Shown here: positions 863 through 21,802 of the stretch, piece after piece
Numbering within the stretch: the first letter of the stretch is position 1
Layout: each line of letters begins with the position of its first letter
From: Bugula neritina
Taxonomy: Eukaryota > Animalia > Bryozoa
NCBI GenBank assembly: GCA_964035545.1
Contig: OZ037771.1
Coordinates: forward strand, 6,543,190-6,607,189
Reading direction: 5' to 3'
Length of the DNA stretch: 64,000 nucleotides
Translations under genes and position numbers: made by a program
Notes under the pieces: generated by a model
Databases searched by the model: none
What the model saw: the letters and a program-made list of their open reading frames with translations, nothing else
What the model was told of the DNA's origin: nothing

Positions 863-2218
863 CTGTTGAGGTTGATTGAAAAACAAATGGAGGTAAAGAT
901 GAATTAATGGAGAGATTGGGAAAACATGTGTGAAAAATGTGGCAAAAGAAGCTATTTTCTCACCTCCTAAGCCCCGACAATTCATAAAGAAAGCCAAAGA
1001 ACTTTGACTATTATAAGTTCTCAATTAATGCACCTAAATGATGCAGCTATTGTGTGATACCTGACACCAGAAAATGTACACAAACAAGATTCTTACGACA
1101 GTGGCCATGTCTAATCATATAATACAATTTAATCTACCTGTACAAACTGTTTTGGAATTTAGTTTAAGGGGAAGTGAGTTTCAACACAACATGAGTTTCC
1201 AAACAAAATGATGAAATTTTAAGCATAATAGAATGTGTATTTATTTATAAGAAGTCTTATTCTGTTTATAAACACCTTGATTCATTCTAATGAATACAGC
1301 TTTACACATGCTACAATGTTTCCTCAATACAAGAACAATTGTGTTGAAGGATATTACAGCAGTCTCTCTCTCAGAGCATCCCTGATTAGTGTGAGCCAAG
1401 TGCATCAGATTAAAAATCAACACGTTGGAAGTGCTAAGCTTTGTAGAAATGAATTGTGTCTAGGTATGCATATATATATTATAATACACTGAGGACAGTG
1501 TGGAACGTTTGCTGGATGATTGCACACCATTTCGCCGCCATATTCCCTTAATCAATGCCAAACATGAAGTGGTTCGTTTTAGAAACTTATTGCAACAACC
1601 GAAAAGCATATGATTATAATAGCTTGTTCATTCACTAACACTTCAAGTTGCTGATTACAATAAACGTTACTGTAAAAGTAATCGTCACAAATTCCCTTAA
1701 CACACAATACCATCTATATCAACTCATGTGCCAAAAATTATTTCATGAGAAACTAGCCGGCCAATAAAAAAAACTTGAAAATAGATTTCAGTGAAATGTG
1801 GAATGCACATTAGCCAATAATAATGAAGCAACATCCTTGCAAAACTATGTGGAAAATGGAGCAAGAATGGCAGCGATGTCACGATGGTCATTTACTGGAC
1901 ACAAAATGTCAGTGATTTAATTTATATGATACCTTTCTATCATCAACAAAACATGATTAATGTATTAAAAATATTAGGATACAGCTTGGCTAAACTAAAT
2001 CTCAACAAACATTCAGTCACCACCTGCCTTGTCTATGCAATCTACTGTGTGCTACTTACTGTTGCAAAACACTAGTATATGAGAATATTGTACACTTTAA
2101 GGAATTTATCCTATGGATATTAATTATATATGTGGTTAGGTTGGAGAGGTCTTTGACCGATAGTTGATTGGTTCTACCAGAAGATTTACCATAGGAGGCC
2201 AGGTCACCCGGAAATTGG

Positions 2219-2356
2219 TAGATGCAACACAAAATGTTGGGGTCATTGAGTACAGTGGTTCTGGGATGAGGCCTCTGAGTTTGAAGGTTTTAAGTTTGGA
2301 CAATGATGTGTATGCAATTACTACAGTCAGTGACCCCAAACTTTGTGCTGCATCTA
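2219..2356. mobile_element. Short hairpin MITE family A
   Basis: ~40-bp imperfect TIRs TAGATGCAACACAAAATGTTGGGGTCATTGA ... TCAGTGACCCCAAACTTTGTGCTGCATCTA; related copy at 7782-7907. Confidence 0.65.
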
Positions 2357-2497
2357 TCGATGATTCCCAAATCACTCCTTCCAAATTACAGCTTACTATG
2401 TTAGTACTAACCAACGCAGTGCAAAAGAGAATATATTTACTTACAGTAGCCTAGTAGAAATTCAGTTATAGTTATCAACTAATAATAATGTAAATAC

Positions 2498-5400
2498 CTT
2501 TTTCGTGGTCTGGCGCATTCACATTCTGTGTGGTTGACAAAATTTACAGTTTGAATACTAGATTCTCTCTAAAAATGAATATATGATAAAAACAATTAGT
2601 AGTGGAACTAACACAACAAACAAAAATACAATATTATATATACTATACATTACACAATAGAGAATGACAAAAAAATTGAAGTGAAATTTCTATATTATGG
2701 GAAATTATTTGATAGATCATGATAATATATAGAAGTATAAAAATATTGGTAAAATAATTACATTTTGTAGAAAAACAAATTTCATAATTTTATTTTTGTA
2801 ATTATAATTAAATAACCAATACTAAATAAACCATTTAGTATATTGGAAGTGAAAGCCCATAAAACCAATGAAATTGAAATTGGTCAAGATATTTTTCATT
2901 TTCTAATCCGACACTTGTACTAGCTAGCAAAAAATATTGGTAAGCAATTTGTAAAATAAAAAATGTTTACTTTATAGCATTGCTAGAACAATAGGAAATT
3001 TGTGTTCAGGATTTAAGTCTCATTTTATGAATATGATTACAGAGAGAAAAAGGGAGAACAAAAATACCTTCAGCTAAATATGATACAACATACAAGGTAC
3101 AGAACAAATTCAACAAATGTTATTAGCTGCTATTATAACCTGAATTACAATGGGTGTAAACTTGCAACACCATTTTTTCTAATTAAAACTTTTGCTGCAC
3201 TAATTTTTGCTGTGGCTGTAAAAGATTTGTTATAAGGAATGTTATACTGTTCCTTTAGGCTTCAACTAAAAATAAATATTTATACTAATTCTGATGTAAA
3301 GGATTGTCTCAATAGCAGTGTTACAAGTCTAAGTGCCAAGTTATAGCATAGCCTACAGCTATTTGAATAGATGGTAACGAAAATAAGTTATAGCACTTCA
3401 AAGCACACAAAAATCAAATATTTAAAAGTATTTTCGTAGCAATGGTGAGCGTTTATCATGACAAATTTGCATTACTTTCAGTGTTTAAATAACTTTTCAT
3501 TTCATTGGCTAACAAACTGAGCTTTTTTCGGTCAAATTTTACTCCTTCGTTGGGATCAGGAAATGTTTAACCTTTTTATTACTTGGCAAGTGAGTCATTA
3601 AAAATTAAATTAGAACATACAAACATAAATAGAAACCTTGTTAAGCAATCCCGGACAATTTTTCAATTGCAAACAACCAAGAGGTTTTATAAGGATTTTT
3701 ATGAGTATTTTATAAGCATACATGGAACACTAAGAAGCTATTTATAAATTTATTAGATGTAACTTTGTTTAGAATGACTAAATTGTGAAGTCACCTGTGT
3801 GACAACAGTTTCATTTTGTACTTCCTGTAGGTGTTGAGGCTGATTGAAATAGTAGAGAGTAAGTTCTAGTTTTGAATTGTGTACAATGCTTGAATTTATA
3901 CGAAACAGCTTTACTATAGCGCTTTTTACAATGAAACTTGAGAGTGTGAGTGATACTAACATTGAGTTAGGGTTAGTTGGAGCTAACACAGAACATGAGA
4001 AGAAACAAAAATTTGTATCCCTATTAAAAGTACGGAAGTTAAAATAATACACGCTGAGAGATTGAAGACATTAAGTTATTAGTTATTAGGTTGATGAAAG
4101 ACCACCAGCAGACACTGCGTAGACTTGTCAAACAGTAAAACAGTTAAATGGTTATTAGAAGGTACCTTCATTACATCTGTTACAGACAAACACGACACTC
4201 AGAGAGAAGGGGTAGTCACGGAATGAGTAACAGATATTTTGCCAGTGCGGCGAGACTAACGCAACATATAAGACAGGCTCTACAGCTGCCTCTCGTACCA
4301 CACAATGTGTAAGGAACTAAGGCTTTTCTAAACACACAGCTAGCAACAGAAAAGGGTGGCCAGTGGGAGACAATTACGGGTCATTAATGGGTTGTATGGA
4401 GAGTTAATAAAGCTAATAAGTTACCAGTGAGCTTACTCTGACATCCAGAGCTACCAGCTCCGTCTCCTTTACCAGGCAGGAGCTATTGCTTGCGTCACAA
4501 TGAAGTCTGGTAGTGTGTGGACACCTGTGCAGCTCTATAGCATAGCACGGCACACTCAGTGAACATACTCTGGGATCACTGATAGACATGCGCAGAAAGT
4601 GAGAGGCACTGTGAGGTACCATGTTTTTTATTTCATCCTGGTAGATAAGTTGTGGTCTTGGTGCACATTCCAGCTCTGTGGCTTCTGGTTGATCAGGTTC
4701 GGTTTCTAAACAGAAATATTCTATGTCAATTATACAAGTACACAGCTGCACAGTTTCAGAAATAGCTCAACCTTGTGGGACAATCATATGGTAAATGTTT
4801 TTGAAATTTTTTGGTGACAGGAAATTGATATACAGAAATTACATATCTATTAAAAACATTAGCAGAAGTAGTAGTGGTTAAATATTCTTCCCAGCTGTCA
4901 CAAATATTTCAAGACTGTATATACTCATCATGCAGCTGAAGATATGTAAATATATATCTCAACTTCCCATTTTGGACACAAGCGCTGGGGAAAGTTAATC
5001 AGATTGCATCTAGATTACAAATAGAAGAAATTTCTCTGTTGTGAAAAAAAACTTTTTTTTCTTTTATGCTGGAACTTTTTTGCATTATTTTTAATTTGCC
5101 ATTCAAATCTGTTATTCAGCATTACAGGTCTTCAAAATAGAAAAATAATCTAACATCTGTATCGCGGGCTATTTTACTGAATATTTAACATCAAATGATA
5201 ATATTTATTAAATATATGAGGTTAAATAATTAATTACTATAAGTGAGTTATTCTAGTCAAAAGAAATAGACTTTCAATTACAATAGTGAAAAGTTCAAAG
5301 GTTCTGGGTTTACAAATTTATAATTTGTCTCAAAAAGCTAGTGGGAGTTGTCTACCTACAGCCAGTAACTTGAGACTACAATGTAGTCTACATCATATAA

Positions 5401-6322
5401 AGTAACTATAGAAGGTAAGTAAAGCTTAGACATCTCCGGCAGAACTAGCCGATGTTCTCTATGTGTGTAACCTTGGCTACAACACAATAGCAAATATATG
5501 CAGCTTTTAAACATTTTTCTAGTGTGATGCAAAAGTTGGTTTGGATAAATTAAAACAAAAACGCATAATTTCATTCGAGGTTTGAAGGTAAAACTAAAAT
5601 TGAGTGTTTGCAGAGTGACAACTGACAACTCTCGTATTTGACTTGGTGCAAGAGTGTAAAATGTAGTGACAGTGTGTGGCGTAACATCAGCATTCTCTCA
5701 TCCATTTCCAAAATAAATGCCAAAATTTAATTTTATGTCAGACTGTTGTACTTGGCCAAATTCAAGTGGGCGATGACTTCTCCTCAAACTGACACAGAAT
5801 TCGAGGTTGAAAATTGTCACACATTTAGTAAAGTCAACAAATTGACAGCCTGCCAGAAGTTTACCCAGGCTTACATGTTGCATATTTCTCTAAATTTAGT
5901 TGGACAAACAGAATTCTAATTAATGCGATTGTCTACAAGACTGCAGACCATGCATTTGATTTAGCACAAAAAGAGGACCTGAACAGTGAGATTAACAAGC
6001 TTGCGAGAACTAACTCTATAGCAGGAAGTGAGGAAGAAATTTGCGACACAAGCCTACCTGACACAGCTGTAGAACGTTTCTGACGCAGCAACCGACGAAG
6101 AGGTGCCACGGGCATTGCAGGTGTTGGATCCTCAAGAATCTGTTTGAGAACCAAGTCTATCTGACGGTTGGTGAGATGCTCTAGGCCAGTTGCTTTTCGT
6201 ATGGCTGAGTGATAAACTGTAAATATCTTGGATATTTCTTCTTTCTGGCAAAAAATAAAGGTTTGAGTCAGACTGAGAACAAAGTAATGTCTGCTAATTG
6301 AGAAATCATTAGTTACCACCAT
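2498..6322 (-). CDS. PDGF/VEGF-related growth factor (PVF-like) precursor, spliced; C-terminal exons uncertain
   Basis: Phase-compatible GT-AG exons 6244(or ATG 6322)-6058, 4705-4437 and 2568-2498 join to ...LRRLLRQKR/STAVSETEPDQPEATELECAPRPQLIY...VPCYAIELHRCPHTTRLHCDASNSSCLVKETELVALDVRRESSIQTVNFVNHTECECARPRKR. This has a furin site (RQKR), then the CxPR, LHRC and NHTxCxC motifs of the PDGF/VEGF cystine knot. Possible downstream exons at ~615-535 and ~108-96 are tentative. Confidence 0.75.
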
Positions 6323-7781
6323 GACCAGTTGAGTCTCTGGTCATTCTCTCTAGGTTACACAGGTGATCCCAATGTCCAAAGTACTGAGGGATCATGTCAC
6401 ATTCCATGATAAATTATAGATCAATCCTCATTTCTTTAGGAGAGTCTTAGCAAGCATTAGTAAATTGAACGTCAAGTTGTAAGGTTTCATAAAATGAGAA
6501 CAGCTAAAGATTGAACTGACTTCTGCTATTTTATTTTGTGTTTTATATTTTTAATATTAGGAAATAGATTAAGACAAGAATAGCTGTTGAAAATACAATG
6601 GATTCTCTATTTTTCTCATTGACCCAAACTATTTACGTATTTAGTAGTTTTATAAGTAATAGTGTGTACCCTGATTGTGTATCAAAGCAATTTCAAACTG
6701 ATCAGAGAAAGAATTAGGTCCGATATGGGACTAAAAAGCTCGGATTTTAAAAATAATCAGTTTAAGTCATACTTAAGGAACATCCTGGAATATTGTATAA
6801 AACAGCCAATGGTTTACATCCTCTTTGTTAGTAGTCTTTTATTTCATTTCCTTATCTAAATATTCTAAGAAGTCACTAATTTTAGCCAACAGCTAGTGAG
6901 TCAAATTAGATAACAATATTTCCTCATTCATGACAATAAAATGCTTTTAGTTGTGTCACTAATTGTTGCTGAGTAAACGATAACCAATGAAAAGTTTCTT
7001 CAAAGAGGAAATAAATGCAGAGGCTGCTGCAATATTTACATATTAGGCAAAATTGTATGTTTGTATGTATGTATGTTTGTATGAAGTGTCTTCACACGAG
7101 TCATTAATCTAAGTGAAATGTGCAGACAATAAGATAGAAGTAGGATGTAGATTGTTACAAAGCTCAGTATCTGATATCGAAAGTAGTACCTTCTTCATAT
7201 TGACTTTAACTGAAACAAAACTCATTCACACCCAAACTTATTTAAATATATAGACTAGGTGAGCTCACAGCTACTACATTAGAGTTTGTAAGAAAGTGAA
7301 GGGGGGGGGGAGTATGTACCCTAAATAAAAATATCACACACAAAATTTTAAGTTGGATTTGGGTTCGAAAATCCTCACATGTGAGGAGTTTCAAACCCAA
7401 ATCCAACTTTGTAAAAATAATTATAGAACTTGGGCTATTAAAGTTTGTCATTGCTCCATAAATAGGAAAGTAGCAAACCATGGCTATAGCATCTCACAAC
7501 CTGTTGATAATCCTACTTATGAATGTGTATTATATGGAGGACCACTTGAAGTGTTTACAATGTTGTACCAATAAATTTCAGCATTCCTATCACAACATAT
7601 TGTGTAATTCCTAAAATATTTGCACGAAATGATAGCTAGGAACTCTACTGAGGAGAAAACAAAAATCTCAGTCAGGGAAAGCCTAGATCCACGCTCTTTC
7701 TTCAAGGGTTACTACCAAATGGTTTGCAAACATTTGAGTTAAATTCTTGGGCTAATCTGATCGTGTTAAGTTGGAAATGGT

Positions 7782-9486: not shown

Positions 9487-10840
9487 TTTAGCTGACTTGC
9501 TCTGTTAGGCTGCTACTAGAGTAGCCTAAATAGAATGGAAGGCTGCTGAGTAAAGCTTTCTGCCCCCTTATGTTGTAAGCTACTTACTACTGTCTTGCAA
9601 TGCAAGATAAAACATGTTATGTAATATCTGCATTTATTATTGTCACAATTCATGAAAATATTAATAATCTTATGGAATAGTTATCAGTTAAACTAGTTCT
9701 TGCTGAATTACACTGCCTAATCATCTCAATTCTCAATTAATATAGCTTACTCAAGCACTAAACAAACTGTTAATTTATATTAAAATTGTGTATGAAATTT
9801 TAGTTAGTTTAGTTACAGCAACAAAAACCACTAAAATAATATTTTGAAATTAAAAATGTTGGATAAAGTTTGAAGGCACTAGATACTGGTTTACTGGTTT
9901 ACTCTAGTACTGCAGGCTTTGTTCAACTTTGCTGGACATAATGAGTTGGTAAAAATACCTGCATAATGATTCTCATAATGAGGATTAGAAACCTACAAAA
10001 TTCAAGCTTTCGAAGACTGTCACCTGTTCAAACCAACAAAGAAATGTTTTGCTGTTTACATCCGCTAAAAGTGCAAAGTGAAGCCAAACTAAAATATGCT
10101 TTGCAACCAAATGTCTGAAAGCAATTCAAATTTTCATCAATTTGTAGCGGCAACCACTTGATTTTTAGCAAAATCAATCGAGCAATGCGTTGGATACTTC
10201 CAGATACATGTTTTCTGAAAGTTATGCTAAAATGTAATTGTTTCAAACTTTTAGCTTTGCAGCATGTTTTTCTGCACAGCAGAGATTATGCAATAGTATC
10301 ACTACTCTCTCATCACTCAAGGTCCAGGGTTCAACGCCATTCAGACAACATAATATTTTGTATGAGATGGCTAAAAAATTCTAATACTTATATAAGTAAA
10401 CGTTTATTCTTTTCATATCTAGGTGACTGATTAAGTAGATGGCAAATGCTTAGGAAATGCTGGGCAGATTTCTTGTTATAACAAATTTAAAATGAAATAA
10501 AAAAGTTCTAAAATAGATAAAAAGTATTTCATCCTGATATACAGAGATGCAACAAACTCTATTATTTGTTATGGAAATAGAAATCAGGATAGAGGGGCAA
10601 GAAATGACAAAGGGAGCATGGGAACTGAATTTTACCATAAGGCCCAAATTCGGAGACCACATATGCTAATATTTTTGTCACTTTTTGAAGCAGCATAGGA
10701 AGTTTAAACGTCACTAAAAATCCTCTTCTTTGTTAATTATTAAAAACATTGAGTAGAAATAAAACCTTCTTTATGTAACTTAGGAAGGCATCAATAATGG
10801 TGGTGACCAGTGGAAGTGTAAAGGTGGTTTTGTACAGAAT

Positions 10841-11908
10841 AGACGATGTATGTTTGGTACAATTAGTACCTTGTACTAAATCTAAAACACTCACCACTAT
10901 AACTTATATAAACTTCTGCAAGTTCAAATGTAAAATGCATACTTCTAGAAAATAGCTGTGCAACTTTTATTACATGCATTATTTTATTTCATATCTTAAC
11001 TTTATGAACCATGAGTTCATTTTTCAAAATGTTTAAATTAAATGCTTAAAAAATGCATTTAAAAAATGTATTCCTGCAAAAATGCCCTGGAGCAGCTTGA
11101 CCACAACCCCAGCTGTTCTGGCAAAACACATTTAATGGTTTTTTTATTGACATAGTGGTGAATGAGCTAGTTGTTTTTGGCAGTTGAATATAGCCACGTT
11201 GCAGGCAATTTTATACGATTCTGATTGGCTGGACTCTACATGACCAGCTAATGATTGTATCTGATAGGCCTAATAATGCATTTGTCTTTGAAAATGTAGA
11301 GTTTTATATGAGTTATAGTGGTGATATTTTAGAGTTGGTACACGCCCCTTTTTGGTTGAGTTTTATAGTCTGATCATGCTGTAGTCATCTATACAACACT
11401 TGAGTGTATGGGGAAATTATTAGTATTACGAAATCTGTTTTGGCTTACTTTGCTATGCCAGTTTTCTGACTTGGTTTGTAAGCAACTATGTAGGCAGTTA
11501 TAACTTAGGATGATTTCATCAAAGGTAGACATTACTTAGGCCTTAGAACATCAAATCAACCAGTGCTGTTACTTGGTTGTATTGTAAAGCATTATCGAGA
11601 GCATAGCGCACTAGCACAGTCACTGAGCTGCAATGGCAGTGCATGCTACACCAAACTTATCAGTTCTATTATAATATCTTATGTAAGGCACGTAAAACAC
11701 TAGGCTAGTCTCTGTTAGTATGTAGAGCAGTAGCACAGTTACAGCAGTCACACCACCCTTCTCTATCCTGTCTACCTAGCACTGAGGTTGCAATAATGAT
11801 AATCATTTCATGGTTTAGTTTTAAATCCATGCATACTACTAAATACATTCTCATAGTCTGGTTACTTTGTGTGCTTCAGTTTACTTTGATGTACTTATTC
11901 AAAAAATT
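10841..11908 (+). repeat. Left terminal inverted repeat (1,068 bp)
   Basis: Reverse complement of 19062-20129; same length, no mismatch seen in the segments compared by eye. Confidence 0.95.
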
Positions 11909-12268
11909 GTTTTACCTAGCATTTTGTCAACAGTTGTTAACAACAGACAATGCATGTAGACTTTTATCTATATATGTGTGAGTTCGCGAGCTTTCTTTCG
12001 GCTCTCTTTGTTGAAATCTATATATTATTATGAATTAAAAGCATTTACATTTGTATAATATCTTCAGATCATATTTGACCTAGTCTTGTATTAACTATTT
12101 ATTTATTAAAATAAGGCTTGGTATAAAAATAATAAGTTTCAAAACAAATGAAATAGTTAATGTATATAAACAAAATATGCATATATTTGTATTAAATCAG
12201 TGGCAGTCATACAAAACCTCAGTCCAAAATGAAGATCAAGGAAAGACCTACTTTCAGTATTTTAACTT

Positions 12269-14587
12269 TCACTCCATTTTTGCTGCAGCTAAAGGCTTTG
12301 TTTCTATTTCTGAAAAACAGGTCTGCTTTTTTGAAGGCTCCTCAGTTTGATTATGCTGCAGCCAAAATGCTGGGCTGAGATAATCGTTAAAAAATCTGGA
12401 CAGTTTGATGAACATGGTTTCTGTGAATCTCAAGTCATGTGTTATGCGTTGAGTTACACTTCCCCTAACAGTAAATACAAAAAAATCACAATATTTAGCT
12501 TTAGTTATTTTAAGCTGACCTTGTACTTGGCCATAATATTGGTGTTTCTTTTTGAGGATTGACTTTGTGCCATCGAAAGATTTTTTTAGAAAGGAAACTG
12601 TATTGAATGATGGGAGATCATCTAAAGCCGGGCACTTAATTTCCAGAATGCCTTCCCCGTGACACTCACAGCTCACTATCCCATCAGGGGAAGCACCTAA
12701 AAATGCAAACTCTGTGGACAAAAACAGTCCACAGTCCCTAACAGTTAGTTTCTTGTGATGAGGGCTGTTTAAATTTAAGTATGTCTGTTTTGCTTTAGCT
12801 TCCATTGAGCGGCCATGCTGAATGGAAGGTACAGAGCTTATGTCTCCTGGGCTTATTAATGAGCTTACTAATTTGCTCATGTCAGTACGTGCGTCCTTAA
12901 CTTGAGATTCCATTCGTGTCTTCACACGATAGAAATTAGAAGCAGTAATTCGGCCATGTCTGAGCAATTTCCAAAGGGGGCTGTCACTCTGCTTCACTGT
13001 TGCTGCTTCTATTTCCCACACTTGATTTCTTGTTATGGACATGGTTCTGACCAATTTAGAGAAATGCTCTGGACTATCTGCGCTCTCTGCCAGGGTTGAC
13101 ATAACCAGATCTTTAAATGGTTCAACTTCTATAAGAAAACTTATCAATCTATATGTATGCTTAATGTACATACACAACACAAAATTTTTGTTGTGTATAT
13201 CAAACATATGCAGTATTACAGAAAATAGAACATTTAGATGGTCAGACATAGTACTCCTTATGTGTTGTACCTTTTAATAATGTGGTTTCTTGAACTTTTT
13301 GCCATTCTTCAAGGCTTGGTTTTTTACCATATTTTTCAAGAATATATGTACTCTCACTAGCAAAGATTTTAAGTTCTTCCTCCCACTCTTTGAAAATTAC
13401 ACCTCCATTGTTACTAGTAGCCACTTTTCTATGCATTCGGGCATAATTCCTGTCTTTTCCTGTAAACAGTAAAGTGCAGCAGTTATAACTATAAATGGCA
13501 CCCTAATTCTATTTTACCAACAGTTAAAATAATATTTATTAACTCAATTATTATTTTAGTAAAAAATTCGCTAAGTAACAGTCATAAACAAAGTTACTTT
13601 AACAATTTAAGCCAAATATTTTCTCTACTTTATTCTTGATGCTTACCTTTTTTATAATCTGGTTTAAAAAAATGAAGGTCAGCAAGACGCCTTGGTGTAC
13701 ACACACTTTTGGTGGAGCGTTTCCAGTTGCACTCTCCGTCAGTGCAACTTCTTTTGAATGGCTCTTTTTGGGATATATAATCAAGTTTGAAAACAACTGC
13801 TGCTATATGGTTGCAAGAGGAGCTAAGCCTGAAATAAAAAATTTAGTTCAGCATGATATGTAAATATTTTTTAAAAACACAGAAAATCATACTCTGGCAA
13901 AATTTGCACACAATACTTATTTATAACTATCATTAAGTCATTTGAAAAATTTGATAGAGCCGGAATATAATATGTCATTGCTTACCCTGCAGTACAGCTG
14001 CACCAAGCAGAAAGTATCTTCCCAGTTATTTGAAGGCAAGCAATCCAAACACTATGTGGGGTTGCAGAAATTCTTTCACTAGGTCTACACACTGTTGTAA
14101 AATATGCTACATTAGATGAAGGTTCATGGTAATATTTTATGGTGCTAACCCAATCATCCGCAAAATATGCATAGGCTTTTCCTTGCTTATATCTGCTATA
14201 CATTTCTGCAGAAAGAGCAGTGTTGGCTTCGTTCACATACATAACAAGATCACTAAATAAAACTTTTGGCCACATTGAAATACTGTCTCTTTCTTCACTC
14301 CAATCTTTAATAGTCAGTGGATCCAGTATTACTGTGCCGTCATTAGTTTTAAGAAGATCTAAATATTCCCGTTTGCTTTGTGCTTCCATCTCTATTGCCG
14401 ACTTTGCAGGCTGATAGTCAAGGTGCATTGCTCCATAAACTAAAGAGATTAACTCAACCTTACTTTTTTTACTATGTGGCAAGTTTCTGATTTTTAGATA
14501 TTCTTTTAGAGCAGTTACTTTCCATGTAGAAATTTCTTCAAATGTCTCTGTCAATTGTTTTTCTTTTGGAGAAACTGCTAATGCCAT
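12269..14587 (-). CDS. Transposon-encoded SAP + SWIM zinc finger + YqaJ/lambda-exonuclease-like PD-(D/E)XK nuclease (~610 aa, 4 exons)
   Basis: Exons 14587-13986, 13828-13647, 13459-13271, 13128-12269 are GT-AG and phase-compatible (1833 nt). SAP-like WKVTALKEYLKIRNLPHSKKSKVELISLV; SWIM CSCTAGLSSSCNH formed across intron 1; nuclease motifs RITASNF, HGRSME, GASPDG, EIKCP, YYGQVQGQL intact. Confidence 0.9.
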
Positions 14588-14589
14588 GT

Positions 14590-16005
14590 TCACAACTGTA
14601 GCTGGTCCAGGATATTACAAGTTTATTTTTATGTTTGCTGGTAAAAACACAAAATAAGTTAAATTGATCATCATAATAAAAAGTGATATTTGTACATAAA
14701 TGAAGTTACCTAAGAATGTGTAACAGGCATCAGTATACAGAGAAAGAAAATAGAATTATTTACTAGAGAAACAGTATTTGTTGCAATATGGTATGGTGTG
14801 TCATTATAACTATTAATTTTGAGTAAAACATGTATAAAATATAACTAACCTGTTGGCTCATGTATACAGATCTCTATAAAATTGAATAAAGCAAAGGTTT
14901 ATAAGCTTTATAAGAAAGCAAAAAAAGCTAGTTCTAATAAAGTTGTGAAGAGTTTTCAAACTGAGCTGCGTTTTGCTGTATCTCTAAAACTACTGCAGCT
15001 GATGAGTATTAAACTATGGTATACATTCACTGCATAGCCCAAAGGTAGCTACATAGCCAGCAGAGGTAGGGAAATAAGGACAGTAACCCTAACAATAATG
15101 GTATAACCCTAAATCCAACAGTAAACAGAAGGCAAATGAATCACATCACAGAGCTTGCTGACGTAGTCTATCTAATCGGAACTAGGAATTTTAATGAGAA
15201 ATTTGTTGTTGCGACAGCATGAGTGAATCATACTGTGGGTGTCTGACAATCATTTACATTCATGTTGTAAATGTAAAATCTGCTAAGGATATCACTTATG
15301 TTTTGCTTGCTATATTATAATACAAATACCTTCTGTTAGAAACTTATGTTTATGTCATTAGTTTGTACGGTACTCGGGCATGCTGGTACTCATACTCATC
15401 TCCTCATAATGAGATTTAGTGGATTATAGTAGCTACACAAAAGGTGAGTAACTATTTCAACAATAATTAACTAAAGTCAGTCGCTGAACATGTTATTTCT
15501 GTCCACATTTGGATAGTTCTGTAGCAAAGCACAGAAGTTTATTGAGCATATGCAGTCTATGTATTTTAGTAATAGATAAAAATTTGTTAGTCTTTCACTT
15601 TTTGCATTTCCAACTAGATCTGGCTAAAAATAGATTTATTTCAATCAGTTTACTGTGAAGGGCTGAGATGCTTGTGAGCAATTTTTCAAATGCTGTTCTT
15701 ATTAAATGCACAACCTTTTGCAAACAGGTAAAGGTTTCAGTCAACAATGGCTACTATATCAAATTTCCTCAACTTTTACTTACTCAAAGTTACCAACATT
15801 AATTACTGGCTTTAGCACAAAACTGTGTTGACAACTTATATTCCAAAATATCTGTGGTATATTCCTTAACTTTACAGCATGCAAGCATTTATGTTGGGGA
15901 AAAAACTTTCACTATCTTTTGTAACACACATTTAGTTATCAGGTTTTGTTCTGGTAGGAATCTAATCCAATACCGAATATTTTGCTTGGCATTTTACAGA
16001 TCGGC
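14590..16005. promoter_or_regulatory. Putative bidirectional promoter with 5'-UTR introns for the two transposon genes
   Basis: The genes diverge from here. Acceptor TTTTACAG just before transposase ATG 16006 with candidate donor AAG/GTGAGT ~15443; minus-strand acceptor ~14639 and donor CAG/GTTAGT ~14849. Confidence 0.4.
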
Positions 16006-18143
<2,138 letters not shown>

Positions 18144-19061
18144 CACTTTTATAATAATATTCTTCTTTATGTGCTATTGTATACGTATTTGCTATACCAC
18201 TATGCTTTATAAATAAAGGTCTGATATTATTACACTTTTGTCATATCTGCTTATCTTAATGATTGTTGAGAAGGATTTTGGGTGAAAGTAAATGGCAGCT
18301 CAGACTTGATACTCATTTTATAAAATGCTAACTTATGCATAAATAATATTCTGTTAGTACCAATATTGTATGCAGTCAGCGTTGAAATATAATGCCTTCG
18401 TTTTGATGGAATCGACATTTTCTCTGTAGCTATCATGTTGCATCACACAATATGAAAAAATATTCAAGCCCAATGTTTAATGACCGTTTATTCTAACATT
18501 CCAAATTATTAGGAGAAAGCCTTTGTATTTTACCCAACTGACTAAAAAATGTATTGGAAACTCATTAGTAAAGTTGTTGATGTTATTGCATTAGCTTCAG
18601 AGCTAAGTACAGATGTTTCATCCAGCAATGACTTGAGACTGAGAAGTTCAACTTTAATATCACTTATACAAACAGGGCAAATTGCATAAAACATTACTTC
18701 ACAGTTAAAAGAAACTAAACTATATTGTCCCATGGCTGATGTCATTACATTTGTAGAATAATCATACTGTTTAGCTAAGTAAATCGTATACAAGAAAGGG
18801 TTATCAACATGGTACCATGGTGATAATACCAACTAACAATATAGACCCACATGCAAGGCACTACATGCTAATACTCATTTTTATACAAAATGTCTACATT
18901 ATCTATTGCTAATACCTGTGCATTTAAACTCAATGCAGATGAATATGTGACGGAGTAAAAAAATGCTGTTCTACAAATTTAAAATAAAATAGTATTGGGT
19001 ACACAAGCAAATAATTTATGGCTATAGCTAGGCTAATGCATTTGTAATGAGCGTGTGAAAT

Positions 19062-20129
19062 AATTTTTTGAATAAGTACATCAAAGTAAACTGAAGCACA
19101 CAAAGTAACCAGACTATGAGAATGTATTTAGTAGTATGCATGGATTTAAAACTAAACCATGAAATGATTATCATTATTGCAACCTCAGTGCTAGGTAGAC
19201 AGGATAGAGAAGGGTGGTGTGACTGCTGTAACTGTGCTACTGCTCTACATACTAACAGAGACTAGCCTAGTGTTTTACGTGCCTTACATAAGATATTATA
19301 ATAGAACTGATAAGTTTGGTGTAGCATGCACTGCCATTGCAGCTCAGTGACTGTGCTAGTGCGCTATGCTCTCGATAATGCTTTACAATACAACCAAGTA
19401 ACAGCACTGGTTGATTTGATGTTCTAAGGCCTAAGTAATGTCTACCTTTGATGAAATCATCCTAAGTTATAACTGCCTACATAGTTGCTTACAAACCAAG
19501 TCAGAAAACTGGCATAGCAAAGTAAGCCAAAACAGATTTCGTAATACTAATAATTTCCCCATACACTCAAGTGTTGTATAGATGACTACAGCATGATCAG
19601 ACTATAAAACTCAACCAAAAAGGGGCGTGTACCAACTCTAAAATATCACCACTATAACTCATATAAAACTCTACATTTTCAAAGACAAATGCATTATTAG
19701 GCCTATCAGATACAATCATTAGCTGGTCATGTAGAGTCCAGCCAATCAGAATCGTATAAAATTGCCTGCAACGTGGCTATATTCAACTGCCAAAAACAAC
19801 TAGCTCATTCACCACTATGTCAATAAAAAAACCATTAAATGTGTTTTGCCAGAACAGCTGGGGTTGTGGTCAAGCTGCTCCAGGGCATTTTTGCAGGAAT
19901 ACATTTTTTAAATGCATTTTTTAAGCATTTAATTTAAACATTTTGAAAAATGAACTCATGGTTCATAAAGTTAAGATATGAAATAAAATAATGCATGTAA
20001 TAAAAGTTGCACAGCTATTTTCTAGAAGTATGCATTTTACATTTGAACTTGCAGAAGTTTATATAAGTTATAGTGGTGAGTGTTTTAGATTTAGTACAAG
20101 GTACTAATTGTACCAAACATACATCGTCT
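19062..20129 (-). repeat. Right terminal inverted repeat (1,068 bp)
   Basis: Reverse complement of 10841-11908. Confidence 0.95.
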
Positions 20130-21802
20130 ATTGTGTGTCACCAGGTGGAATGTTTGAATGAATGGTGGATGTTGGACTGGTTTGTGTCGATTACAATTTT
20201 ATGGAAATGTGTTGAATCTTGAGCCAATATTTCAAGACTAATCAATCATCACAGCTAAAGAGTAGAATTAATGTCAAGTTAATAGAACTGATGAGTTGAC
20301 ATGGTTATGGGTACGAGATCTAAAACTTCAACCAACTACATGCCGAACCTTTAGAGTTATGCAACTAACCAAAATTTGCACTTAATAGTTATAGTTAGGT
20401 GCAGCAACAGCGAAATTCCAATAGCCAGAGATCCTTAATTTTAGTTTAGAGGCCGAAAAAACATAACTATTTTCATTACATTTTTATCTATAACAGGGCT
20501 TAACCTAAATCTCTATTACTGTACCGGCATACCTCTATAATGATATGATATAGGAATTTTAAAGTACATTTGTAGGTATCAGGTTTATATTGATTATATT
20601 TTAAGTAGCTTTTCAATTATGTAATCTAGTAACGAGAGTAAAGAATAGTTTTGAAGTTTAATTTTGAATAATTTGGCAGTTTCACTTTAAGTTACAGCTT
20701 GCAGCAGAGGACGTTAGAGTATATATTTGACTTTCATAGAATTTACCAAATGGATGACAATACTAATAGCCAGGGTGCTGTATATAATTAGAATAAAATA
20801 ATATAACAGTATCAGCAGAGACTCTCAGCGAAGCAGCCAGGAGTATCAAAACAGCACCAGTTGAATAAAGCTCTAACAGAACTTAAATCTCTTATTCAGA
20901 TCATTACAAATAATGGAAGCCTTTGATCTGATGAATTTATTCCTTCATGTATAGACATCTGACAGTACTTGAATACAGCGCCATTTAGTTTCTAGGTTTA
21001 ATCTCTGAATGTTTATGTAACTATTTCCACACTTGAAGCTACTACAGTTTGTATGGCTTACTCTTCACAACAGCTACTTCTACTACCCAGTTACTCTGCA
21101 CTCCTTATGTGTGCTAGCAACTACCATAAGCTTCTGTTAAACGCTTTCATGGTTGGTGAAAAATTTTTTGGCCAAACTCCAAAATAAGTTTAATGTTAAA
21201 TATTATGTATTGAGTATATCTCCTTGTAAAGGTTTTAATAAACCAAAATTAATATCAACTGCTACTGGAGTAGCTTTAATACAAATCAAGTAACTCAAAT
21301 TAGAGTAAACATTCTCCCTGGAATTAGGTCTGCCATAGAACGTCATTGCTGAGAATATTTACAAAAAAGGCTTGTGGATTGAATGGTAAATAAATTAGAA
21401 TCCCAAAAACTATTGGTGGTTTAGTTATTGTTTGGACAGACTAAATCTCATGCTAAAGGCTAAATTTTCTGAAACTGAACCTACACATGGATTGTGTGAA
21501 TCATTATCCACAAAAGATAGCCCATGAAGCTTGCAAGACTTTGAATAAACGAAAATTCCTGTAAAAATGCAGATTCTCATAATTTGTTATTCAAAGATAA
21601 ATAACGAATTTGGCCAGTAAACCTGAGGAAACCATTATGGCAAATAAAACAGTGTAAAAACTGCTACATAACTGTAGTAACAGTTGCAAGAAACAAAAAC
21701 AATATTATTCAGTAACTGCTTTATTTTGTATATAGGCAGCCTTTGTAAAACATTATTGTAGGAGGAGGGGTTTGTTGAGTTACCTAACTGGCTCTATTTC
21801 AA

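Follow-up and report, generated by a model that had tools for sequence, protein, structure and literature searches.

An intact-looking ISL2EU-type transposon of Bugula neritina with kilobase-long terminal inverted repeats that evolve in concert

We analysed a window of 64,000 nucleotides from the bryozoan Bugula neritina (assembly GCA_964035545.1, contig OZ037771.1, positions 6,543,190 to 6,607,189 of the forward strand). Positions 10841-20129 of this window correspond to a 9,289-bp element that contains no N, has AGAC...GTCT termini and lies between flanks reading ...CAGAAT and ATTGTG.... Realignment of the left terminal inverted repeat (TIR; 10841-11908, + strand, beginning AGACGATGTATG) with the reverse complement of the right one (19062-20129, - strand) gave 0 mismatches and 0 indels over 1,068 bp each, and the match ends at the next inner base, where G is opposed to A. 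The original prediction, made from the sequence, had described these termini and exact arms and had put the TIR share of the element at about 23 %, all of which holds (the TIRs make up 2,136 of 9,289 bp). The arm recurs in other copies. An AT dinucleotide adjoins the element on each side (10839-10840 and 20130-20131) and is completed to AAT by the A at 10838 and to ATT by the T at 20132.

Two divergent genes lie between the arms. Support for the gene models comes from RNA-type contigs, from splice phases and from single exons searched individually against uninterrupted relatives, to which the exon matches are colinear for both genes. The transposase gene (+ strand) is, as read from the sequence, a two-exon THAP-HTH-DDE gene with a predicted intron, open in this copy. 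Exon 1 (16006-16649) encodes a THAP zinc finger (Pfam E=4e-9) and a linker, corresponds to residues 20-202 in a THAP-HTH-DDE relative of 461 aa and ends at the donor AAG/GTAAAAG in phase 2, with which the predicted acceptor at 17351 is compatible. The predicted intron (16650-17350) includes an AC/AT microsatellite with about 64 AT repeats (16689-16902). Exon 2 (17351-18143, stop at 18141-18143) encodes HTH_Tnp_4 (E=7e-12) and a complete DDE_Tnp_4 catalytic domain (E=7e-45, profile positions 1-158 of 158); in the same relative its counterpart is residues 209-461. The transposase contains the motifs IIDCTE, MADKGF and HVERAI, which we take to be the D, D, E triad.

The exonuclease gene runs in the opposite direction (- strand) in four exons. 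Exon 1 (13986-14587, counted from the first in-frame ATG) has an open frame and a predicted GT donor at 13985-13984, aligns with an uninterrupted relative of 704 aa over residues 23-223 and contains a weak SAP-like motif that falls below the Pfam threshold (E=0.023). Exon 2 (13647-13828), placed by frame and splice sites, aligns to residues 226-284 of that relative. A putative SWIM-like zinc finger, recognised by motif inspection, would span these two exons, with its C-x-C half at the end of exon 1 and its C-x-H half in exon 2; Pfam cannot detect SWIM here because the motif is split by the intron. Exon 3 (13271-13459, 62 full codons) is a linker with an open frame and fitting phases. Exon 4 (12269-13128, 285 full codons plus the stop at 12271-12269) encodes the YqaJ / viral alkaline exonuclease domain (Pfam YqaJ E=2e-18, profile positions 2-149 of 150) and aligns to residues 384-606 of the relative.

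Both junctions of exon 3 are found in contigs from independent runs, the exon 2/3 junction (13647/13459) in run X7 and the exon 3/4 junction (13271/13128, GT..AG) in runs X7 and X9; the RNA-type contig joints shown cover these two junctions and not the exon 1/2 junction. The contig comparison spanned positions 10700-16699. The spliced transcript derives from a copy that differs by 3-6 % from the element at 10841-20129. The exonuclease gene of a related copy is transcribed and spliced. That transcript skips exon 2, a skip that would break the frame in the copy described here. The region between the divergent genes (14588-16005), the most variable internal segment between copies, is presumed to be a shared promoter region. 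The predicted presence of two open spliced genes is borne out, with frames and phases that fit and exons colinear with relatives, the transposase intron being a prediction.

This gene content identifies the element as one of the ISL2EU type, ISL2EU being a group of the PHIS superfamily. The original prediction named this group, and THAP, HTH_Tnp_4, DDE_Tnp_4 and YqaJ are all matched in Pfam. The features tested (DDE_Tnp_4 with HTH, a THAP N-terminus, a YqaJ gene and an A/AT/T target) are present, in agreement with the THAP-HTH-DDE transposase, YqaJ second gene, A/AT/T target and animal hosts of ISL2EU (PMC4482050, PMC4122938). The nearest homologues carry THAP and adjoin YqaJ genes. Two relatives elsewhere, about 50 % identical at the protein level, contain both genes, in convergent orientation rather than divergent as here, and have TIRs of about 70 and 170 bp. 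The element also departs from what is usual in the group in its termini (AG here, usually GG) and in its length (9.3 kb, where the group mean is about 4.8 kb) (PMC4482050, PMC4122938). ISL2EU TIRs ranged from 6 to 259 bp in a 2015 survey (PMC4482050), a range that is typical and not defining, so that the 1,068-bp TIR is about four times the longest in that one survey, to which the comparison is confined.

The target site was predicted to be AATT with duplication of AT, and the family as a whole agrees with this. AAT...ATT flanks were found in 24 of 24 distinct family copies examined, while 124 unoccupied paralogous sites, obtained through a copy of subfamily B that sits inside a high-copy repeat, read AATT. 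Because empty paralogous sites read AATT and occupied ones AAT...ATT, we conclude that AT is duplicated, in agreement with the published ISL2EU target A/AT/T with AT duplication (PMC4482050). Judged by sequence alone, insertion of a T...A-ended element between AA and TT without duplication would produce the same sequence. The two flanks of the element at 10841-20129 are single-copy in the assembly with no alternative haplotig, and for this reason the empty site of the locus itself was not observed.

We compared the element with three other groups. PIF/Harbinger and Spy share with it a related DDE_Tnp_4 core and AT-rich targets, and TIR length in PIF/Harbinger ranges from 5 to 1,042 bp, with about 1 kb attained in a few families (PMC4482050). 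PIF/Harbinger elements have a 3-bp TWA duplication and a Myb/SANT partner gene, neither of which is present here, and membership is excluded by the 2-bp AT duplication and the YqaJ partner gene. Spy elements have one gene and insert in AAATTT without duplication; the empty AATT, the occupied AAT...ATT and the two genes exclude this group. Galileo and the Foldback-like elements of Drosophila, from the P superfamily (PMC3688188, PMC3573991), have only the behaviour of their long TIRs in common with the element. Galileo has a P-type catalytic family, a 7-bp duplication, no exonuclease gene and tandem repeats in its arms, in contrast to the IS5/PIF-type DDE, the 2-bp duplication, the exonuclease and the arms without tandem repeats described here. 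The DDE_Tnp_4 domain and the 2-bp duplication rule out Galileo or Foldback-like membership.

The 216-Mb genome contains three further near-full copies with about 99 % identity, one young deletion derivative and many older non-autonomous derivatives. Further transposase lineages are present at 97, 94 and 88 % transposase identity. TIRs measure 0.6-1.07 kb in all copies and derivatives examined, and long arms are also found in subfamilies B (2.08 kb), C (about 3.6 kb), D and E. The youth claimed for the element is confirmed by its sister copies, and the other copies examined have long TIRs as well. Mis-assembly is known to create perfect long inverted repeats, which raises the question of an assembly artefact. 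We consider this vanishingly improbable, as the structure occurs at at least four unrelated loci with different flanks as well as in dozens of shorter derivatives, each bounded by AAT/ATT, and contigs from independent runs contain arm together with internal sequence.

Whether the family is still mobile is a separate question. The youth of this copy and its two open genes imply that it was mobile in the recent past, and it may be so today. The transposase exon is 99-100 % identical in four copies, three of which have no exon indel. Between two copies the exons differ at 8 of 2,470 positions compared with 47 of 3,883 in non-coding internal sequence (Fisher p=1.3e-4), and the exons show no nonsense changes; six of the eight exon substitutions change an amino acid, so that selection on the proteins is not clear-cut. 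Alternatively, the copy may look intact while the family is immobile, a lineage recently extinguished or silenced. Among the sister copies, one has lost 1 bp of its THAP exon and one is split by an LTR element, and hairpin RNAs from the long inverted arms could contribute to silencing. At the locus, the assembly flanks and run contigs showed no empty allele, excision footprint or insertion polymorphism, and no paralogous empty sites for young copies were found among the loci examined. Against this stand the near-identical transposase exons, the transcribed and spliced related exonuclease gene and a young 3.8-kb deletion derivative with 99 % identity. We regard an immobile family as rather unlikely.

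The arms evolve in concert. Over 775 arm columns, subfamilies A and B show 81 differences that are mirrored in both arms and 3 that are private to one arm. Within the young family, nine variant events that separate two sub-lineages are mirrored in both arms, position 91 has been resolved in opposite directions between the sub-lineages, and at least three arm-to-arm transfers are visible. In a tree of arms the grouping is by subfamily and not by side. Taken together, these results indicate that repeated copying of sequence between the ends keeps the two alike.

The original prediction had left two explanations for the perfect arms, recent formation or homogenisation of the ends. Recent de novo formation of a long TIR by duplication of one end, with no homogenisation, would readily yield the 100 % identical arms of this copy and the 99 % identical sister copies. 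But subfamilies that are 8-20 % diverged possess homologous arms, which match over the same 800-1,085 bp, and neither the mirrored A/B differences nor the sub-lineage-specific variants present in both arms of the young family are expected from it. Mirrored differences in the long homologous arms of subfamilies about 11 % diverged lead us to reject recent TIR formation, which we hold to be very improbable, and support the homogenisation half of the prediction. In subfamily C, left and right arms differ by about 7 % and these differences are inherited across copies, which indicates that the arms are not rebuilt at each jump.

We consider it very likely that the locus holds an intact-looking, autonomous-type ISL2EU element with old, inherited long TIRs that are homogenised by arm-to-arm copying. 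An autonomous-type ISL2EU DNA transposon would have inserted in AATT, duplicating AT. Presumably the ends are recognised by its THAP-HTH-DDE transposase, which cuts and pastes the element, and the second gene would supply a SAP/SWIM-like/YqaJ protein of the lambda-exonuclease type. TIRs of 0.6-1.07 kb would be an old family trait, inherited and not rebuilt at every transposition, and occasional arm-to-arm copying would keep the arms nearly identical. Homology-directed gene conversion between the inverted arms is the most likely mechanism of this copying.

We know of no role for the second ISL2EU gene, and a literature search yielded no publication addressing what the ISL2EU YqaJ protein does. 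It is conceivable, if improbable, that the YqaJ protein resects transposon ends or the donor gap and thereby drives recombination between the kilobase arms. If so, the long TIR would be a self-homogenising structure kept by an element-encoded recombination function, and transposition would follow a recombination-assisted form of cut-and-paste.

The gain is incremental, since the superfamily was known already, as were long TIRs and, in Galileo, the near-identity of arms. The group is little studied, and to our knowledge activity has been demonstrated for no ISL2EU member. With its open genes, its many derivatives and a clear target rule, this young family is well suited to a first transposition assay. 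The kilobase arms also offer a clean natural case of concerted evolution between inverted repeats in single mobile elements, and long inverted arms can favour inversions of host DNA and the formation of hairpin RNAs.

The arms have an internal structure of their own. A subterminal block at TIR positions 32-100 (10872-10940, + strand) recurs inverted, with 81-84 % identity, at TIR positions 436-502 (11276-11342, - strand), and the arrangement is mirrored in the right arm. Such a recurrence might indicate a composite, Tn10-like element, with an independent mini-transposon making up, or lying within, each arm. However, the inner site lacks the terminal 30 bp of the TIR, including AGAC, and has no AAT/ATT junction, on which grounds a nested mini-element in the arm was rejected. 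Among the genome matches there is no solo 0.5-kb or 1.07-kb unit, and all arms pair into elements, making a composite origin extremely improbable. Conservation along the arm is nearly flat across subfamilies, so a binding site cannot be inferred from it. The block pair, also found in subfamilies B and D, is a candidate secondary binding region for the transposase through its THAP domain.

The inverted-repeat search of the region yielded a single dominant pair. Direct comparison of window positions 10841-11908 with the reverse complement of 19062-20129 found 0 mismatches and 0 indels over the 1,068 bp of each arm (terminal inverted repeat, TIR), which bears out the original prediction. The arm match ends inward at G versus A, and the few extra outward bases added by the search consist of the palindromic AT and of chance matches. 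Spanning 9,289 bp, the element starts with AGAC, ends with GTCT and is flanked by ...CAGAAT on the left and ATTGTG... on the right; its arms make up 23 % of its length, the share that had been estimated. By comparison, the 2015 PHIS survey gives ISL2EU elements TIRs of 6-259 bp, mostly with a GG start, a mean length of ~4.8 kb and two genes, THAP-HTH-DDE and YqaJ, the role of the second being given as unknown (PMC4482050; also PMC4122938, PMC9179366).

To place this copy in its genome, we searched the 216-Mb, 321-contig assembly, in which the window lies on contig C7, and drew the descriptions of copies and subfamilies from the loci fetched. At least 135 arm matches were found. Further copies, which the original prediction proposed to look for, are present and carry long arms, which excludes an assembly artefact. 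Two near-full sister copies are ~99 % identical to this one (C1:21302304-21311548, 9,245 bp, and C8:2186243-2195527, 9,285 bp). In a further ~99 % copy, at C1:14.65-14.67 Mb, a 7.5-kb LTR retrotransposon (L034:2582-10000 into L045, G000:C1 ~14655400-14662915) interrupts one arm at position 587. The retrotransposon has a 1,559-aa ORF, a pair of 305-bp LTRs with 100 % identity and, from overlapping match coordinates, an apparent target duplication of ~5-6 bp. Element positions 1655-7122 are missing from a 3,818-bp deletion derivative, 99 % identical (C6:3093757-3097574, L033:2001-5818), and 1 bp is common to both sides of the breakpoint, the pattern expected of interrupted gap repair following excision. 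Beyond this young subfamily (A), four older, non-autonomous subfamilies were distinguished: B (~2.08 kb, arms ~800 bp, 98.5-99.5 % alike), C (~3.6 kb, ~800 bp, 93 %), D (~3.0 kb, ~930-970 bp, 92 %) and E (~4.0 kb, ~620 bp, 89 %).

The identity of the arms had been attributed to recent formation or to homogenisation. The A and B arms have mirrored differences at 81 of 775 columns, both arms of each element agreeing, versus 3 arm-private sites; 64-70 sites are mirrored between A and C, and a tree of arms clusters by subfamily rather than by left or right side. These results indicate that the long TIR is old and that its arms evolve in concert, so recent formation is rejected and homogenisation stands. 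The same mirroring is found within the young family. The C8/C6 sub-lineage is set apart from the C7/C1 sub-lineage by a 2-bp deletion together with six substitutions, clustered at arm positions 886-944 and all present in both arms. C8 alone also has position 142 changed in its two arms. As for position 91, two copies have T/C, the focal copy T/T and C8/C6 C/C. Together these variants imply at least three separate arm-to-arm transfers. In subfamily C, left and right arms differ by ~7 % and copies inherit these differences, so homogenisation is occasional and does not occur at every jump. It probably depends on homology. From these patterns we infer that the inverted arms may undergo gene conversion with each other, for example in break or gap repair.

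The nearest system in behaviour is Galileo of Drosophila, whose transposase belongs to an unrelated superfamily. Galileo has a THAP transposase and TIRs of 0.5-1.2 kb, 98-100 % identical within one copy, with THAP sites both ~70 bp in from the end and further inside the arm (PMC3688188, PMC3573991). Arm positions 32-100 of the focal element are repeated in inverted orientation at 436-502, and this block could be a candidate counterpart of such binding sites. We rejected a nested mini-element as the source of the repeat because the terminal 30 bp have no repeat at the inner site.

The focal and C8 copies differ at 8 of 2,470 exon sites versus 47 of 3,883 non-coding internal sites (Fisher p = 1.3e-4), and at 8 substitutions plus 1 indel in the 1,068 sites of each arm. 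None of the exon changes is nonsense, while 6 of the 8 alter an amino acid; neither copy has an exon indel. In the C1:21.3 Mb copy, 1 bp of the THAP exon is deleted. The element has likely been mobile recently.

The anticipated ISL2EU gene content was recovered as Pfam domains on opposite strands, in divergently oriented genes: THAP, HTH_Tnp_4 and full-length DDE_Tnp_4 (plus) and YqaJ / viral alkaline exonuclease (minus). Both gene models are open, in agreement with the two uninterrupted spliced ORFs proposed, the transposase intron being predicted. All homology searches used single exons as queries. The predicted transposase gene (478 codons) has 2 exons, 16006-16649 and 17351-18140 (stop 18141-18143), which align colinearly with a 461-aa THAP-HTH-DDE protein from an uninterrupted relative (residues 20-202 and 209-461). 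Its predicted intron has a strong donor (AAG|GTAAAAG, phase 2) and an acceptor of fitting phase. Within it lies a compound AC/AT microsatellite (16689-16902; (AT) ~64 repeats), and every sister copy has an indel in this intron, which probably accounts for much of the length variation among copies.

The exonuclease gene has 4 coding exons and 610 codons (14587-13986, 13828-13647, 13459-13271 and 13128-12272, stop 12271-12269), with GT..AG introns throughout and compatible phases. Exons 1, 2 and 4 are colinear with residues 23-223, 226-284 and 384-606 of an uninterrupted 704-aa ORF. Read by eye, a SWIM-like pattern is split across exons, C-x-C ending exon 1 and C-x-H in exon 2; SAP reached only a below-threshold Pfam score. 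The exon 2/3 and 3/4 junctions are present as joints in contigs of sequencing runs X7 and X9, and a 1,191-nt spliced X9 contig, 3-6 % divergent from the focal copy, shows that an exonuclease gene of this kind is transcribed. This contig joins exon 1 straight to exon 3 (13459-13986, minus strand). It may represent a non-productive isoform, since in the focal copy the loss of exon 2 would cause a frameshift that runs into stop codons. X2 and X7, two other samples, have contigs with a 35-bp insertion at 15346-15348, between the two genes. Their contigs show the internal sequence in ~99 % and in ~93 % variants alike, so the species harbours several coexisting lineages.

The transposase exon has more than 100 genome matches (four at 99-100 %, then 97, 97, 94, 88, 84 % and below) and the exonuclease exon only 17, pointing to a clade that has diversified and includes few members of autonomous type. 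The focal element is an apparently intact member of this clade of kilobase-arm, two-gene ISL2EU-like elements. Two relatives on metagenome-assembly contigs (~50 % transposase identity) have TIRs of ~170 and ~70 bp and the same pair of genes, arranged convergently. In relatives on such contigs (L053:10001-15224, L055, L056, L057) both genes are apparently intronless and the exonuclease has a weak PHD-like tail, which the focal exonuclease lacks.

AAT...ATT flanks were found in 24 of 24 distinct copies inspected. One subfamily B copy lies within a high-copy host repeat, where the occupied site reads ...CCTAATAAT (element) ATTATAACCC... and 124 of 124 unoccupied paralogues read ...CCTAATAATTATAACCC..., so the target is AATT, with AT on either side after insertion. 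By sequence alone, AT duplication is indistinguishable from a blunt insertion at AA|TT by an element whose ends are T...A. AT duplication follows the A|AT|T target rule published for ISL2EU (PMC4482050), the same rule as here. The proposed AT target site duplication is thus upheld through the B-copy paralogues, while an empty form of the focal locus was not found in an assembly search with both flanks or in run contigs at the locus. The host repeat (L026:150-401; L027:150-399 / 2480-2729) has at least 247 candidate matches per flank, the 124 empty sites being exact. The flanks of about eight B copies are 100 % identical over 250 bp, hence these copies spread as host-repeat passengers and not by their own transposition; most of them lack a ~327-bp segment adjoining the insertion.
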